From Lepidodermella squamata (Eukaryota > Animalia > Gastrotricha): DNA of 64,000 nucleotides. Location: NCBI GenBank assembly GCA_047495785.1, contig JBLDXI010000021.1:868001-932000 (forward strand), given 5' to 3'. The notes beneath the pieces are model-generated. The model ran no database searches, had not been told where the DNA came from, and worked only from the letters and a program-made list of their open reading frames with translations. A program made the translations under genes and the position numbers. Of this stretch, positions 6,746 to 24,780 are shown one piece after another (the first letter of the stretch is position 1; every line of letters starts with the position of its first letter).

Positions 6746-7915
6746 ATGCCCCAATACTTTCAATACCTGTCGAAGGAGAAGGAGGCCGAATTGAAGGCCA
6801 ATGCTGAGTACATCGTTTCGAAGGGCAAGGGTATCTTGGCCGCTGATGAGTCAACTGGAACTATTGCCAAGCGTTTCGAGGGTGCCCAGATCCCCAATGA
6901 CGAAGAAAACCGTCGCCTGTACCGCCAACTCCTCTTCACCGCCCCATCGGCTGACATCGAGCGTCACATTGGCGGTGTCATCATGTATCACGAAACCTTC
7001 TACCAGAAGGCCGATGATGGTACCCCCTTCGTCGAATTGTTGAAGAAGCGCGGAATTATGCCCGGTATCAAGGTCGACAAGGGTCTCATCCCCCTGGCTG
7101 GCACTGACGGTGAACAAACCACCCAGGGCATGGACTCGCTCGGCGAGCGTTGCGCCCAATACAAGAAGGATGGTGCTGTTTTCGCCAAGTGGCGTTGCGC
7201 CCTCTTCATCAAGCCGTACGCCCCCAGCTACGGTGCTATGATCGAAAACGCCCAGGTCCTGGCTCGCTACGCCAGCATTTGCCAACAAAACGGCATCGTC
7301 CCGATTGTTGAGCCTGAAATCCTGCAAGACGGCGACCATGACCTTGCTACCTGCGAGAAGGTCACCGAGGAGGTCCTGTCTTTTGTCTACAAGGCCCTCG
7401 CCGAACAGCACGTTTACCTGGAAGGCACCCTGTTGAAGCCGAACATGTGCACCCCCGGTGTTTCCTACGCACACCGCGCTGGTCCTCAGGACATCGCCGC
7501 TGCAACTGTCACCGCCCTGCAACGCACTGTCCCAGCTGCCGTTCCCGGCGTCGTTTTCCTGTCTGGTGGCCAGTCGGAACTCGAGGCAACCGTCAACCTC
7601 AATGCCATCAACCAGTTCCAGGGCAAGAAGCCGTGGGCTCTCACTTTCAGCTATGGCCGTGCTCTGCAGCACTCCGTCATCCGCACCTGGGCTGGCAAGA
7701 AGGAAAACGTTGCCGCCGCTCAGGACGTCCTCGCCAAGTTGGCCAAGGTAAACATTTGAAATACCTTCAATATTTGATTCATTAAATTTCAATATTTTAC
7801 CCTGTCATTTTAATTTTAGAACAACGGTCAAGCTTCGATGGGCGAATACGTCCACGGTGCCAATGATCCCACCACCGCTGGCGACTCTCTCTTCGTTGCC
7901 AAGCACGCCTATTAA
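6746..7915 (+). CDS. ALDO: Fructose-bisphosphate aldolase class I (intron 7748-7819)
   Basis: [43 protein letters not shown] and C-terminal HAY; strong C-ending codon bias. Confidence 0.98.
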
Positions 7916-18885: not shown

Positions 18886-19206
18886 AAAGGCGAAGGTGCC
18901 TCCCCCGCCCTGCTATTCGTAAACAATAAGATGCGACATTTATTATATTCATGTGTGCGCAAAACAATAATAGTATATAATAAAGTGCGGCTATTTTCGG
19001 CGGAATAAAACCTCGCGCCGGTGTTTGCCTCGTCGAAGAATACAATAACATTTTGATTAGGCGCCGGCGCACAGGTGAGCAGCTACTGTGGCCGGGCGAT
19101 TTCTTTCTAAGCGTGTCCGGCAAATGAAAAGCAAATAGGAGTAGAGCTTATCGGCTCGCAAATCAAGTAACTGCTCTATAGGCGATCGAGTTGACTAGTC
19201 GCAATA

Positions 19207-20282
19207 ATGAAGCAAACTTTCCAACCGTTTTACACCGCGCAGATAATTATTCATGTTGCATATCTAGTTAGTGGCCAGACTCCGCCAAGCGAGTACGAGC
19301 CAATGCTACACCAAGCAGTCGTTGAAGCGGTTTGCTCAAAAAGGATTTCTCCGAATCTCCCTTAAAGCCTTTTAAATTTAGCTAAAAACTATGAACATCA
19401 CCTACGGCGATTTGACGAAAGACGAACGGGAGGTAATAACGAGCCATGTTCGTGAAGGTGCGTTGGAGCTTCAGGTCAAAAGCGAGAACGGTGGTACGGT
19501 TACAAATGACGACCTTGGCGACGTTTTCGAGAATATTCTGAACGCGATTTCGAATAATCCCGACATCGACCTATTTTCTCATACCGAGTTCGATACATTC
19601 TGGACGGGGAAACATAAATTTAGCGAATTGATTCCCAACGGGGACATCGAAGCGAAAATTCTTGACCTTGTTATCATGAAGGTGATGATTGTACCATCAA
19701 ATTATTTCTATACCAAATATATTTTTCTTAGCTTGAAAAGGCTAATTTATATTACGACGAATTTAGCATCGATCAAAAGGACCTGATTGATGATCTAGTT
19801 AGAGCCGCCGCATTTGTCCAGAGCGAAGAAAGCCCGTCATTATCTGAGGAAATTTTGGAGCCAAAAGTAGACGATATCGTGAAAATTCTGGCAACAGATC
19901 AATACAGCGCGTTCTACAACAACTCCGAATTGATGGCGCAAGTTGGAGACATTGCAGAGCTTCCAGTCGATACGTCTGCGCTATTTTCTGAACCGTCGAT
20001 CGCACGCACCGATATGCACGCATTCTGGCAACGAAATAAGGGGATAGGTTATTCGAAAAGCCACGGCGATACAACAACTTGGCGGATAATGTACGCAGGA
20101 GACTTGGATGATGACTTGTCAGGATCAGCCTGGTCTGTACAACGAACAGGTTGACAGCTAATCTTTGTTCAGTTTGAGGAATAATTTTCTTCATTTTTCT
20201 AGATCGTTTTGCATGGCATATTTGCAATATTGCAAGTTTACTGGGTTTTGCGACCTCCAGATTCGCCTATGAACGCCTATGA
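19207..20282 (+). CDS. Repeat-domain family gene A: signal peptide, 2 repeats, short C-terminal tail (exons 19207-19329, 19382-19681, 19732-20149, 20203-20282; 3' end uncertain)
   Basis: In-frame splicing; signal-like AYLVSG-Q; repeat homologous to genes B and C. Confidence 0.65.
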
Positions 20283-20967
20283 AGTAGAAAATTTGATGAT
20301 GTATACTTTTTCCATGATAATACCGTTAGCTTTCACGTTGAGAATGAAAATAAACGAAGTGCAAGTATCATGTTGTTTTAGAAAACATCTTGGTATACTT
20401 ATTGTAATTATTTTCAGAAATTCGAAATTAACGCCGCGCCGACGTTCGAATGATGGTCGAGATTTATGGCATGGATGCAAATTATTTTGGGCTTCGATTC
20501 CCAGCCCCACTTCCAGAAGACATTAAACATTTGCGCCCACCATGCCCTGGTCCACGTGGGCAGCACGCGGGTCATCACCCCATTTGACGGTACCATAATG
20601 GGTGATAGGAACAAAGACATTCGACATTCTTGTTTCTTGTTAATGTTTTGTCGAACAAATGTCCAGCCGAAAATGTTTACACTATCTCTCCGAATTGCCC
20701 TTCGTTAACGCCAGTATAAAAATACCGCGGAGGTGTTCATAAAAAATTGTCAGCGAAATCGGCTGTAAATGTACTTTCAATCGATAGATAAAATTGACTT
20801 GAGGGCAAAGGTTTAAATTAAAATGAACAGTGCGAAACTTCCAGGTGTCGATAGCGAAGCAGCGAGCGGAAATTGGACGAAACTGCACGAACAAGGCAGA
20901 CGTATGCCTTTAATCTGTTCATTTCTGTGGTTCGACTCGTATGTTTTTCTCTCAAAACCGTCAAATC

Positions 20968-22194
20968 ATGGGCAAATATGTTTGGTTCATTGGGCTACAA
21001 GTGATCATCTTTTTGATCAGCGTTAATGGCGATGTAAATGGTGCAGATGTTCTTGGAAAGCTCAGGGAAATGACTATGAATCGGGTATGAAGTAGTATCC
21101 TCGCCAACTTTGATGGTGAATAATTGATGTTTATTTTGTGATAATCTAGCTTCTGAGGGCTGGGATCAAGTACGACGATCTGGACCAGGGTTCAAAGGAC
21201 TTCGTTGATGAACATGTGAAAAGCGTCGCAATGGAATTTACTGATGCAAATGAGACCGCGCTAAATTGTAGCAGCGACAAAGTCATAAGCTTGCTAGCTA
21301 CAGCTCCGAACAGTCCCTTCAGCTCCAAAGCATCTTTGGAACATGAATCAATGCGAACTATGGCTGCTCCGCGTCCGGAAATACACCTAAAAGTTTCGTC
21401 GGATGCTGAAGAAAATGAGGAAGAAAATGAGGTAAACTGATAGGACTCAATACTAAGCAGCTCAATTTTATGTTTTTGCTAGTACCCAGAGGATGAGTTT
21501 GATGGCCCATATGATGAAGAATGGGATGAATCAAACAGCGGCGATGGAAATGACTTTGACGATGAATTTGACCCCGAGTTTGATGTCGGCGGGGAAACTA
21601 CCGACGAGTTATTAACAAGTACCGAGGCGATCGAAACTACGGAGAAAATAACGACCAAAAGTTCGCACAAGGAGAAAACGACGACTGAAAAGTCAAGTCG
21701 ACATCATACGACAGTCGAATCACATGTTGAATCGACAGCGAAGGGGAAAACCCACAGCCCTACAAAAGCTGCGACCAAGTCTGATAATGATCCTGAAGAA
21801 GAGGACAATGGAGATGAGGACCTTGGTTCAAAGCAAACTACTAAGAAATCGCACCGCGCAACGACAAAGCCACCCGCTGAAAACACTACTCATAAGTCAC
21901 AGAAAACTACAAAAGCTGAGAAAAGTTCGAAAACTACGAAAGCTGAGAAAAATTCGAAAACTACGAAAAAGTCAAGTAAAACTACAACGAAGGCGCCGAA
22001 GAAAAGCTCGTCTAGCTCTTCTAAGGACAAAGCTGTCAGCAGTGGTAAGTATTTTATCCATTCTAATACATGCATACTTATATCAAATTTCTTTCCAAGG
22101 TCACACTTTATTCATTTGTGGAGAACTTTACTTGGCAGCATTTGGTTCACTCATCTTAGCGTCTTTGTTTCAACATGCCCAGCAGATTCAATAA
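20968..22194 (+). CDS. Repeat-domain family gene B: signal peptide, 1 repeat, acidic block, Thr/Lys/Ser mucin-like stalk, GPI-like tail (exons 20968-21084, 21150-21431, 21483-22044, 22100-22194)
   Basis: MGKYVWFIGLQVIIFLISVNG signal; 27-nt KTTKAEKSS tandem units; hydrophobic last exon after SSG. Confidence 0.8.
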
Positions 22195-22640
22195 TTTAAT
22201 TCGTTGTCATATTCATCTCAGGTGTAAAAAAATATTCGGAATTAAGTATATGCAAACGAGCTTTATGGTGTATTTTGTTTCAGTGAGATACGATGGATGA
22301 AAACAAATAAAAATTGTCAACCGCTGTCAAACATAATATCATGTATTTTTTCATCAGTCGCATTTGTATCATCATCCCACTGTCAAAATCGAAAATGACA
22401 ATTTTCCACTGCTGAAAATCACGCCAATATATTGGCGGCGAAATGGCGCTCTGTATACGCCTCGCGGCTCCGAAGCGCTGTTGACATAAACTATACGGAA
22501 GGGAGGCAAGGCTTTGGTAAATAGTAGGAATTGGCCGATGGCAAATTATTAACTAGACTCATCGCAGCGCCGGCGCATATTAGGATCGCAGCGTATAAAT
22601 CATCACTTCTGCTGTGTGTAGCCCAGTCGTTTTAATCGAA

Positions 22641-23889
22641 ATGACGGCGCCAACAAGTCGCGCGACCATCGATGACAGCCGACGCGCCAACATTTACAGC
22701 TCGCATTACTGTCTAATGATTCTCACCTTGATGACCGGTCTTATCGGCCATTTTTTCGCCATCTCCTCAGCCCAAACCACACACTCGTCCATCGTCTCAA
22801 CTTATCAAGAGCAGCTATTAGTCCTCGTTATAGCGCGGGTAAAGTACCTATTTTTGTCACTTAATTCAAATTTTTATATTTATATTTTAATTAAGCTTGA
22901 TATCGCGAAGCTTTACTACGATAATCTAGACAAAGTTTCTAAGCTTCAGGTCGATGATGTGGTACTTAATGGCGCGATAGAGCTCTCTCTGCACGAAAGT
23001 ATAGCCGAGGAAGAGCTGAGTTCAAAGGCTGATGAGTTGATGCTGCGTCTGCCATTTTTCGCCACATCAACACCCACAACTACAGTCAAGCCGATGACAA
23101 CTTCTCAAGTCAGCGAGCTTTTCCATTATCAAAATTTGTTAAAAGCTGCTGTTATTGATTACGTAAGTTTAAGTTTAAATATACTATTTGACTAATTTAG
23201 GACAAGTAACGGTCAAGAATTTTTATAGCGAGGGTATATCTAGGATGTTCTTGAAAATCTATATTCCAATCCCCACAAAATCTCCCTATTGTTGTTAATA
23301 CCTATGTTTGTTTAGCTCAGAAACAACACCATTGAGTACAGCTATCTTGGCCCTGACTCGAGAGCCATTATCGATGGTTTCATCGACAACAGCGCACTTC
23401 ACCTGGCCGAAATGCCGCAGGTCTCACAAGCTGATATTGACTTGCAATTGCGGTACATTAAGGAAAGGCTCAATAGCAGTGGCCAGGGTTATCTTTCGAC
23501 CGGTACGCCGGCAAATCCAACACCGGTAGCAATCGTAGAGGCTTCTACTTCGACAACAACTCGAAAGCCGATTTTGAGCTCTATTGCCGCGGCGGAGGGA
23601 AATTCTTCAACTGCCAGCCCAACAACGACGCGCTTCGTGACAACGAAAATTAACAACACACATTCAGCTACAACGTGGTCAGTTCTATCCACGGTGAGCG
23701 TGCTTAATGCAACAAATACAACCAGTTCAGGTAAATACTTCTTGGTTTTTTTTCTCATATGTATGGCAACCTCCATTTTTTGTAGGAGTCGTTGTTGTGC
23801 GAACGGCTGCTTATTTGATTGCTCTAATCTTTCCACTTCTCTTTCCAATTTTCGTGCATTTACTCGTGCCGCTCTGCATTTTCGACTAG
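22641..23889 (+). CDS. Repeat-domain family gene C: signal region, 2 repeats, Thr/Ser-rich stalk, GPI-like tail (exons 22641-22838, 22896-23162, 23316-23730, 23786-23889)
   Basis: In-frame splicing; same intron positions relative to the repeat and tail as in genes A and B. Confidence 0.8.
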
Positions 23890-24780
23890 TGTTGGAAAAT
23901 CAATTAGCATAAAATTGAGACGGTTATTTTGAAAAAATGAAACGAAATTACGCGTTTGAAACCGAAGAGCGTATTTTTATATATTTCGCAATTTGAAATT
24001 TTGTTTGCTGAACTTGGGCTGAGTCAAGTGTCATCGCACAGGTTCGTGTAGTCGAACTTTCGCTGCAATGAATGAACCGATCAACAGAAGGTATCGTAAG
24101 ATGTCGACTATTCTACTCACTGGCGTGGGATCATAACCTACAACAAGATCTTATTTCAGCTTGATAAGTACATCGATTTCAGCCAAGCGCGTTACCGATA
24201 GCTGTTCTCTAATCATTTCAAACGGGAATAGCTGGATTGTCGCAGATAATATGGACATGATTGAATAAGATGCCGCCGGTGTCACCGTAATTTGTTAAAT
24301 GTGCAGTTTTATTTTTGTTTTTCGCTTTTTCATGTTAGCAAACAGATATGCATATAAAACACAGATGTCTATTCCATACAGATGATTCAAGGCCGATGGA
24401 CAAGAATGATGATACTCAAGCACAGGGCTGAAAAATTGATGCTGTTCATGTCAGCGATCCCCGATAAGGATATTGACAAGTCAAATATCATCGATAATTT
24501 TGATGAAACTTTTTCGCAGTCGCAAATGAGGCGAATGTAACGCTAGCGACAGCATAACTTGGCGGAAGCTACTCGACACTCCCTCATTTCGTAAACAGCT
24601 AAAGACATATATTATAACACGAACACCTGAGATCGTGAAACTCAGGCTAAAATTTCCTTGATATAACAGTTGAACGAAAATTGAAGACAATGGGAATTTA
24701 CATAGAAAACAACAAAAATAGTAAATAAAGACAGCGCAATGATGCAAAATATGAGAAGAGTCACTTTAGCAAGGCATCAT

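Follow-up and report, generated by a model that had tools for sequence, protein, structure and literature searches.

Surface glycoproteins that present an N-terminal head on a stalk and are held by a glycosylphosphatidylinositol (GPI) anchor include CD55/DAF of mammals, the Als/Epa-type GPI adhesins of fungi and PsA of Dictyostelium. The locus described here comprises three tandem genes, designated A, B and C, at positions 19207-23889 of a 64,000-nt window from Lepidodermella squamata (contig JBLDXI010000021.1, positions 868,001 to 932,000 of the forward strand). The window, i.e. the whole stretch that was analysed, has a G+C content of ~42% and is eukaryotic, with short introns and a dense gene content. 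In B and C the predicted parts of the proteins follow the same order as in CD55/DAF, Als/Epa and PsA, namely signal peptide, small head, Ser/Thr-rich stalk and a hydrophobic GPI signal after small residues. The head is built from a helical module that is split by an intron at a fixed position and occurs five times in the three genes. We consider it rather probable that the trio is a tandem family of small size and old origin whose products are glycoproteins of the secretory pathway, with B and C GPI-anchored on a stalk and A a soluble paralogue.

Three tandem genes and a split helical module

Three-frame translation of positions 19100-24000 revealed three neighbouring genes on the + strand with four exons apiece and with intact frames after GT-AG joining:

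Gene A, 19207-20282, + strand: 306 amino acids (aa) in a clean spliced frame; exons 19207-19329, 19382-19681, 19732-20149 and 20203-20282; two helical modules without a stalk, last exon uncertain.
Gene B, 20968-22195, + strand: 351 aa in a spliced frame; exons 20968-21084, 21150-21431, 21483-22044 and 22100-22195; one module, followed by an acidic stretch with Tyr residues, a stalk rich in Thr/Ser/Lys and a hydrophobic tail.
Gene C, 22641-23889, + strand: 327 aa in a spliced frame; exons 22641-22838, 22896-23162, 23316-23730 and 23786-23889; two modules with a short Thr/Pro linker between them; the Ser/Thr-rich stalk bears N-glycosylation sequons and leads to a long hydrophobic tail.

The introns of A, B and C measure 50-65 nt, with the single exception of C intron 2 (153 nt, 23163-23315). 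The first one or two introns of each gene are in phase 0, while the last is a phase-1 intron inside a codon whose first letter is G. The last intron of A agrees with those of B and C in phase, in place (after the split G-starting codon) and in size (53 nt), and if it is retained a stop codon comes two codons on. The second exons (300, 282 and 267 nt in A, B and C) are symmetric, with phase 0 at both ends.

The modules are distributed over these exons as follows:

Module A1, 19288-19561, + strand: first helix 19288-19329, phase-0 intron 19330-19381, remainder 19382-19561.
Module A2, 19640-19911, + strand: first helix 19640-19681, phase-0 intron 19682-19731, remainder 19732-19911.
Module B1, 21043-21329, + strand: first helix 21043-21084, phase-0 intron 21085-21149, remainder 21150-21329.
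Module C1, 22797-23075, + strand: first helix 22797-22838, phase-0 intron 22839-22895, remainder 22896-23075; the junction is seen in RNA-like contigs.
Module C2, the most divergent copy, 23121-23495, + strand: first helix 23121-23162, phase-0 intron 23163-23315, remainder 23316-23495.

The original prediction of five split repeats in three tandem genes stands, since all ten repeat halves that it quoted were found in their places by three-frame translation and the frames of all three genes are intact. Its fixed intron is likewise present, as in five of five copies the module intron lies in phase 0, in the same alignment column and directly before the invariant Leu. The repeat length of ~45 aa that had been given has to be corrected: in the alignment of the five units similarity runs ~60 residues past the intron, with a further amphipathic segment, a helix 40-57 residues after the intron, so that the Cys-free module extends over ~75 aa.

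Hidden Markov models (HMMs) built by leaving out one copy at a time recovered each copy at E-values between 3e-5 and 5e-10 against a six-frame translation background that totals 85,000 aa, in which the next best match had E > 1. In pairwise local alignments z-scores rose up to 12.5; eight of the ten pairs reached z >= 5.5, with none of 500 shuffles attaining the observed score, and module C2 was linked to the family through A1 at z 8.9. By these sequence comparisons the five modules are homologous. An HMM scan of the six-frame translation found no further copy of the module in the 64-kb window. The identical intron position in all five copies reflects one inherited intron instead of five separate events, and the duplication of a symmetric second exon explains the two-module proteins A and C.

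Transcription, splicing and constraint

Two sequencing runs were compared with the locus over 4,901 letters: X1, whose contigs look like RNA (this label is a guess), and X2, DNA of a close relative. The X1 contigs skip exactly positions 21432-21482 (GT..AG), which is intron 2 of B with the junction 21431|21483, and exactly positions 22839-22895 (GT..AG), which is intron 1 of C, the repeat intron of module C1, with the junction 22838|22896. Another X1 contig, matching from 23308, shows two mismatches and a loose end of nine letters; as these nine letters match the end of C exon 2, the contig fits the junction 23162|23316 of C intron 2. No junction of B intron 1 was directly seen in the X1 contigs. 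Genes B and C are transcribed and spliced, and the proposed splice model agrees with the RNA-like contigs, with an exact junction for one intron of each gene (B intron 2, C intron 1) and an indirect one for C intron 2.

Gene A is barely covered by the X1 contigs. Compared to X2, 11 of its 12 substitutions are synonymous, with the exons lying in three different genomic frames, and its indels are all intronic. This synonymous excess marks A as a constrained coding gene despite the near absence of X1 coverage: gene A is under purifying selection. Its terminal exon has neither RNA nor comparative support. In exon 2 of C all three substitutions listed are synonymous, and none of the 12 X2 indels listed breaks the frame inside a predicted exon. 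The sole exon indel relative to the window, an in-frame 6-nt insertion at 21817 that X1 and X2 share, affects the stalk of B, which also contains a 27-nt repeat in 2.5 copies (21902-21969); the B stalk is length-polymorphic.

These data bear on the idea that A, B and C are not functional genes but frames that are open by chance, or else copies of another sequence that are decaying. Such an explanation could appeal to the nearly missing coverage of A in the sole RNA-like run and to the lack of homologues in the searches described below. It is opposed by spliced X1 contigs with exactly the predicted junctions, by the synonymous substitutions of A across three genomic frames together with indels that avoid exons, and by the significant relationship of the five modules in the leave-one-out HMMs and shuffles. 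We regard it as extremely improbable and, for practical purposes, as refuted.

Some further observations concern the non-coding parts of the locus. The gene A introns 19330-19381 and 19682-19731 show 5-6 differences plus indels per ~50 nt (~10%) to X2, compared to ~1.3% in the exons and the A-B spacer, a contrast due either to local hot spots that are unexplained or to contigs of divergent haplotypes. The B-C spacer (22196-22640) is fully covered by X1 contigs, as would be the case for a long 3' untranslated region (UTR) of B, for read-through or for a 5' UTR of C; many of these contigs have joints of opposite strands, as is typical of assembly hairpins. A TATAAA box within 22597-22629 lies ~30 nt upstream of 22629, where the match of an X1 contig starts, and suggests a separate promoter for gene C. 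In the contig matching from 22629, the initial 30 letters lack a match at this place, which fits a leader as well as an assembly artefact. Upstream of B, an ATG starts a frame of 69 codons (20824-21030) that overlaps the start of the gene, and a second in-frame ATG at ~20941 would lengthen B by nine residues.

Predicted signal peptides, stalks and terminal exons

Outside the modules the following features were assigned:

Gene A putative terminal exon, 20203-20282, + strand: phase 1, 26 codons, weakly hydrophobic.
Gene B acidic stretch, 21402-21431 and 21483-21578, + strand: between module and stalk, with several Tyr in an Asp/Glu context.
Gene B stalk, 21579-22044, + strand: Thr/Ser/Lys-rich, assigned by composition.
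Gene B terminal exon, 22100-22195, + strand: phase 1; a spacer of 8 residues, 15 hydrophobic and 7 polar residues; candidate GPI attachment signal.
Gene C stalk, 23493-23730, + strand: Ser/Thr/Pro-rich with N-glycosylation sequons.
Gene C terminal exon, 23786-23889, + strand: phase 1; ~26 hydrophobic residues up to the C-terminus; candidate GPI attachment signal.

Hydropathy and simple rules such as the -3/-1 rule served to assess signal peptides and GPI signals. The signal-like N-terminus that had been attributed to all three proteins looks good by these criteria in B and C. The N-terminus of B has a strong hydrophobic core with a 15-residue hydropathy of 2.55 and small residues at -3/-1. For C the corresponding value is 1.92, again with small residues at -3/-1, after a long polar leader; a start at the in-frame Met26 would yield a classical signal peptide with better hydropathy.

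The mucin-like stalks proposed for B and C are evident in composition, with Ser/Thr/Pro contents that reach 52% in windows of 40 aa, and such a Pro/Thr/Ser-rich (PTS) region is missing from A (at most 30%). Gene C encodes six N-glycosylation sequons, most of them within the Ser/Thr/Pro-rich region, and to judge from these features the Ser/Thr-rich stalks of B and C are probably glycosylated. The Tyr residues in the acidic stretch of B are candidate sites of tyrosine sulfation; the stretch loosely recalls the acidic domain of GPIHBP1. No exon of A, B or C matched a SEA or a lectin domain in Pfam.

As predicted, the short phase-1 last exons are hydrophobic in B and C (C-terminal hydropathy 2.08 and 2.57). 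Both tails start directly after SSG at the exon junction, and 6-8 residues separate SSG from the hydrophobic run. The GPI-type C-terminal layout, i.e. small omega-site residues, a spacer, a hydrophobic end and no cytoplasmic domain, is found in B and C but not in A. The proposal of a family of GPI-anchored or secreted surface proteins, with putative roles in glycocalyx, adhesion or recognition, is supported in part: B and C show the layout expected of surface glycoproteins with a GPI anchor, but a place at the cell surface does not apply to all three proteins, as A has neither a stalk nor a convincing anchor. The product of gene A is, by the same token, probably soluble.

In the reading that we favour, each protein would start with a cleavable signal peptide, followed by one (B) or two (A, C) of the Cys-free modules of ~75 residues. 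Each module would consist of a first helix, a turn that holds the invariant Tyr, and a hairpin in which a long helix packs against a shorter one. A single ancestral phase-0 intron after the first helix would have been passed on through gene duplication, and A and C would have gained their second module by duplicating the symmetric (0-0) second exon. B and C would enter the secretory pathway, where their Ser/Thr-rich stalks would be glycosylated, and the phase-1 exon would supply a GPI-type signal, so that the anchor is added at the SSG where the last two exons meet. The helical head would then be held off the plasma membrane in the cell coat, binding a partner or acting as a spacer, while gene A, without stalk and anchor, would encode a soluble two-module paralogue. 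Cleavage of the signal peptide, the sugars on the stalk, the GPI anchor, the position at the cell surface and any role in binding are inferences from the layout of the proteins.

Several points weigh against this reading, and some of them speak for a rather unlikely alternative, namely that all three are merely secreted proteins or proteins of matrix, cuticle or gland, with C-terminal exons that encode transmembrane anchors or serve as rarely used alternative 3' exons, and without any GPI. The three phase-1 terminal introns (20149|20203, 22044|22100 and 23730|23786) have no junction in the RNA-like contigs of X1, B and C also continue into open, partly hydrophobic frames when read unspliced, and X1 coverage runs on past the stop codon of B. 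The ~26 hydrophobic residues of the C tail are long enough for a transmembrane helix, and the B tail closes with seven polar residues. In A the N-terminal core is short, with a 15-residue hydropathy below 1.5, and the weakly hydrophobic tail provides no good anchor signal. Furthermore, both substitutions listed for gene B relative to X2 are non-synonymous (at least two in B, among those listed). On the other side, B and C end 0-7 residues after the hydrophobic stretch, leaving no cytoplasmic tail, both place the small residues of SSG exactly at the exon junction ahead of the hydrophobic run, and a dedicated phase-1 exon occupies a conserved position in A, B and C.

Relatives, fold and comparison with known systems

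In the Pfam and NCBIfam searches for relatives the exons were queried one by one, and only the in-frame read-through of C exon 1, intron and exon 2 (198 aa) connected the first helix to the remainder. With all exons, Pfam gave no family at E <= 0.1, and at E <= 10, including the read-through of C exons 1-2, a single chance match of 11 bits; a single chance match of 13 bits was obtained from NCBIfam. A sequence profile search of the PDB returned one designed repeat protein, with no stretch passing, and otherwise none. There was no usable match in the ESM Atlas by features, none in a word search with the 198-aa read-through and none in two scans of JGI metagenomes with single exons. The HMMER profile search against 1.84 billion representative proteins gave nine matches, all of which we judge spurious because long repetitive proteins scored by sums of 2-14-bit pieces. 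At the sequence level, the module is without detectable relatives in any library tried, in agreement with the claim that the repeat matches no described domain.

A model of the 70 post-intron residues was obtained with AlphaFold2 from the five-row alignment (mean predicted local distance difference test score, pLDDT, 86.6; predicted template modelling score, pTM, 0.68), whereas A exon 2 given to AlphaFold as a single sequence yielded no usable model (pLDDT 50.7). The model comprises a long helix (residues 13-35), a second helix (42-57) and a short one (64-67), and the invariant Tyr lies in a short turn. The post-intron part is predicted to be a helical hairpin, and the complete module would probably form a three-helix bundle, the first helix, upstream of the intron, lying outside the model. 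Foldseek with this model gave generic hairpins with a best E-value of 1.2. A fold search of the ESM Atlas gave template modelling (TM) scores of 0.5-0.63, scattered over unrelated families, and the best VIA-align score (Z 5.6) again belonged to generic hairpins, under the stated background for helical models.

The weight of these negative results depends on the sampling of the host lineage, for which the neighbouring genes are informative:

Upstream of the trio: class-I aldolase (6746-7759), a reverse-transcriptase (RT)-domain gene, a SMAP-domain gene, CDP-alcohol phosphatidyltransferase and NIF3.
Downstream of the trio: ATG8 (minus strand), rdgB/PITPNM, synoviolin, MATH/B-box, F-box, leucine-rich repeat-immunoglobulin (LRR-Ig) and kinase-RCC1 genes.

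Within the RT-domain gene, the open reading frame (ORF) 12245-13075 matches only the generic reverse-transcriptase model RVT_1 (37 bits), and its adjacent ORFs have no Pfam match, so that an identity as TERT is not confirmed. The rdgB/PITPNM exon reaches at most 36% identity to its best named relatives (bivalves, vertebrates). The aldolase shows ~70% identity to proteins of brachiopods, annelids, flatworms, nematodes and insects, and 82-89% only on short environmental contigs from JGI (sample 3300036111). By these identities, sampled environments contain kin of the host, which lack an annotated genome. The identities point to a probably protostome invertebrate and speak against a dipteran, which the short introns had brought to mind. 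Since conserved neighbours are this distant from named relatives, the host lineage is unsampled, and the absence of module relatives is therefore weak evidence. A small, fast-evolving helical module would go undetected in the nearest sequenced relatives, and 'lineage-specific' is not separable from poor sampling of the host lineage.

Two further explanations depend on this point. The module may be a strongly diverged version of a known extracellular helical domain that seems new through fast evolution and an unsampled host lineage. The identities of the rdgB and aldolase neighbours are in keeping with this, and so is the scope of the fold and profile queries, which consisted of the post-intron part and left the first helix outside. 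We nevertheless consider it improbable, as no sub-threshold hint of a known domain emerged from Pfam at E <= 10, the PDB profile search, Foldseek, VIA-align or the Atlas. We give a similarly low probability to a module that is truly novel as an extracellular domain for recognition or adhesion and restricted to the host lineage; A might then cooperate with the heads of B and C, for example by bridging them as a ligand or by acting as a decoy.

If the favoured reading of a stalked, GPI-anchored pair and a soluble paralogue is true, the locus extends a widespread design, in which a folded head sits on a lipid-anchored mucin stalk, by a new head domain, and it provides a clean, small case of module gain through symmetric phase-0 exon duplication. 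The trio is a further sign that this invertebrate genome holds many private families of surface proteins. No long-standing question is opened and no unusual mechanism is indicated; among poorly sampled animals that evolve fast, orphan families of secreted or surface proteins are common.

With regard to fold, the hairpin of a long and a short helix superposes on many generic alpha-helical hairpins and three-helix bundles of the PDB (Z 5.0-5.6, TM 0.5-0.6). These matches belong to unrelated proteins (spliceosome, oligosaccharyltransferase (OST), G-protein-coupled receptor (GPCR) helices, phage cores) and lie below background, and thus point to no specific fold family. CD55/DAF, Als/Epa and PsA carry CCP, lectin-like or PA14 heads, whereas the Cys-free helical head of B and C has no detectable relation to them and its anchoring is predicted. 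The GPI mucins TcMUC of T. cruzi, CD24 and CD52 (PMC6817596) are likewise small, dominated by Ser/Thr and equipped with a GPI signal, and they are often tandem, fast evolving and lineage-restricted. However, they have no folded helical head and no sequence similarity to A, B or C, and the B stalk differs from them in being unusually Lys-rich and in following an acidic stretch. Compared to these systems, the orphan family is new, while its architecture is already known.

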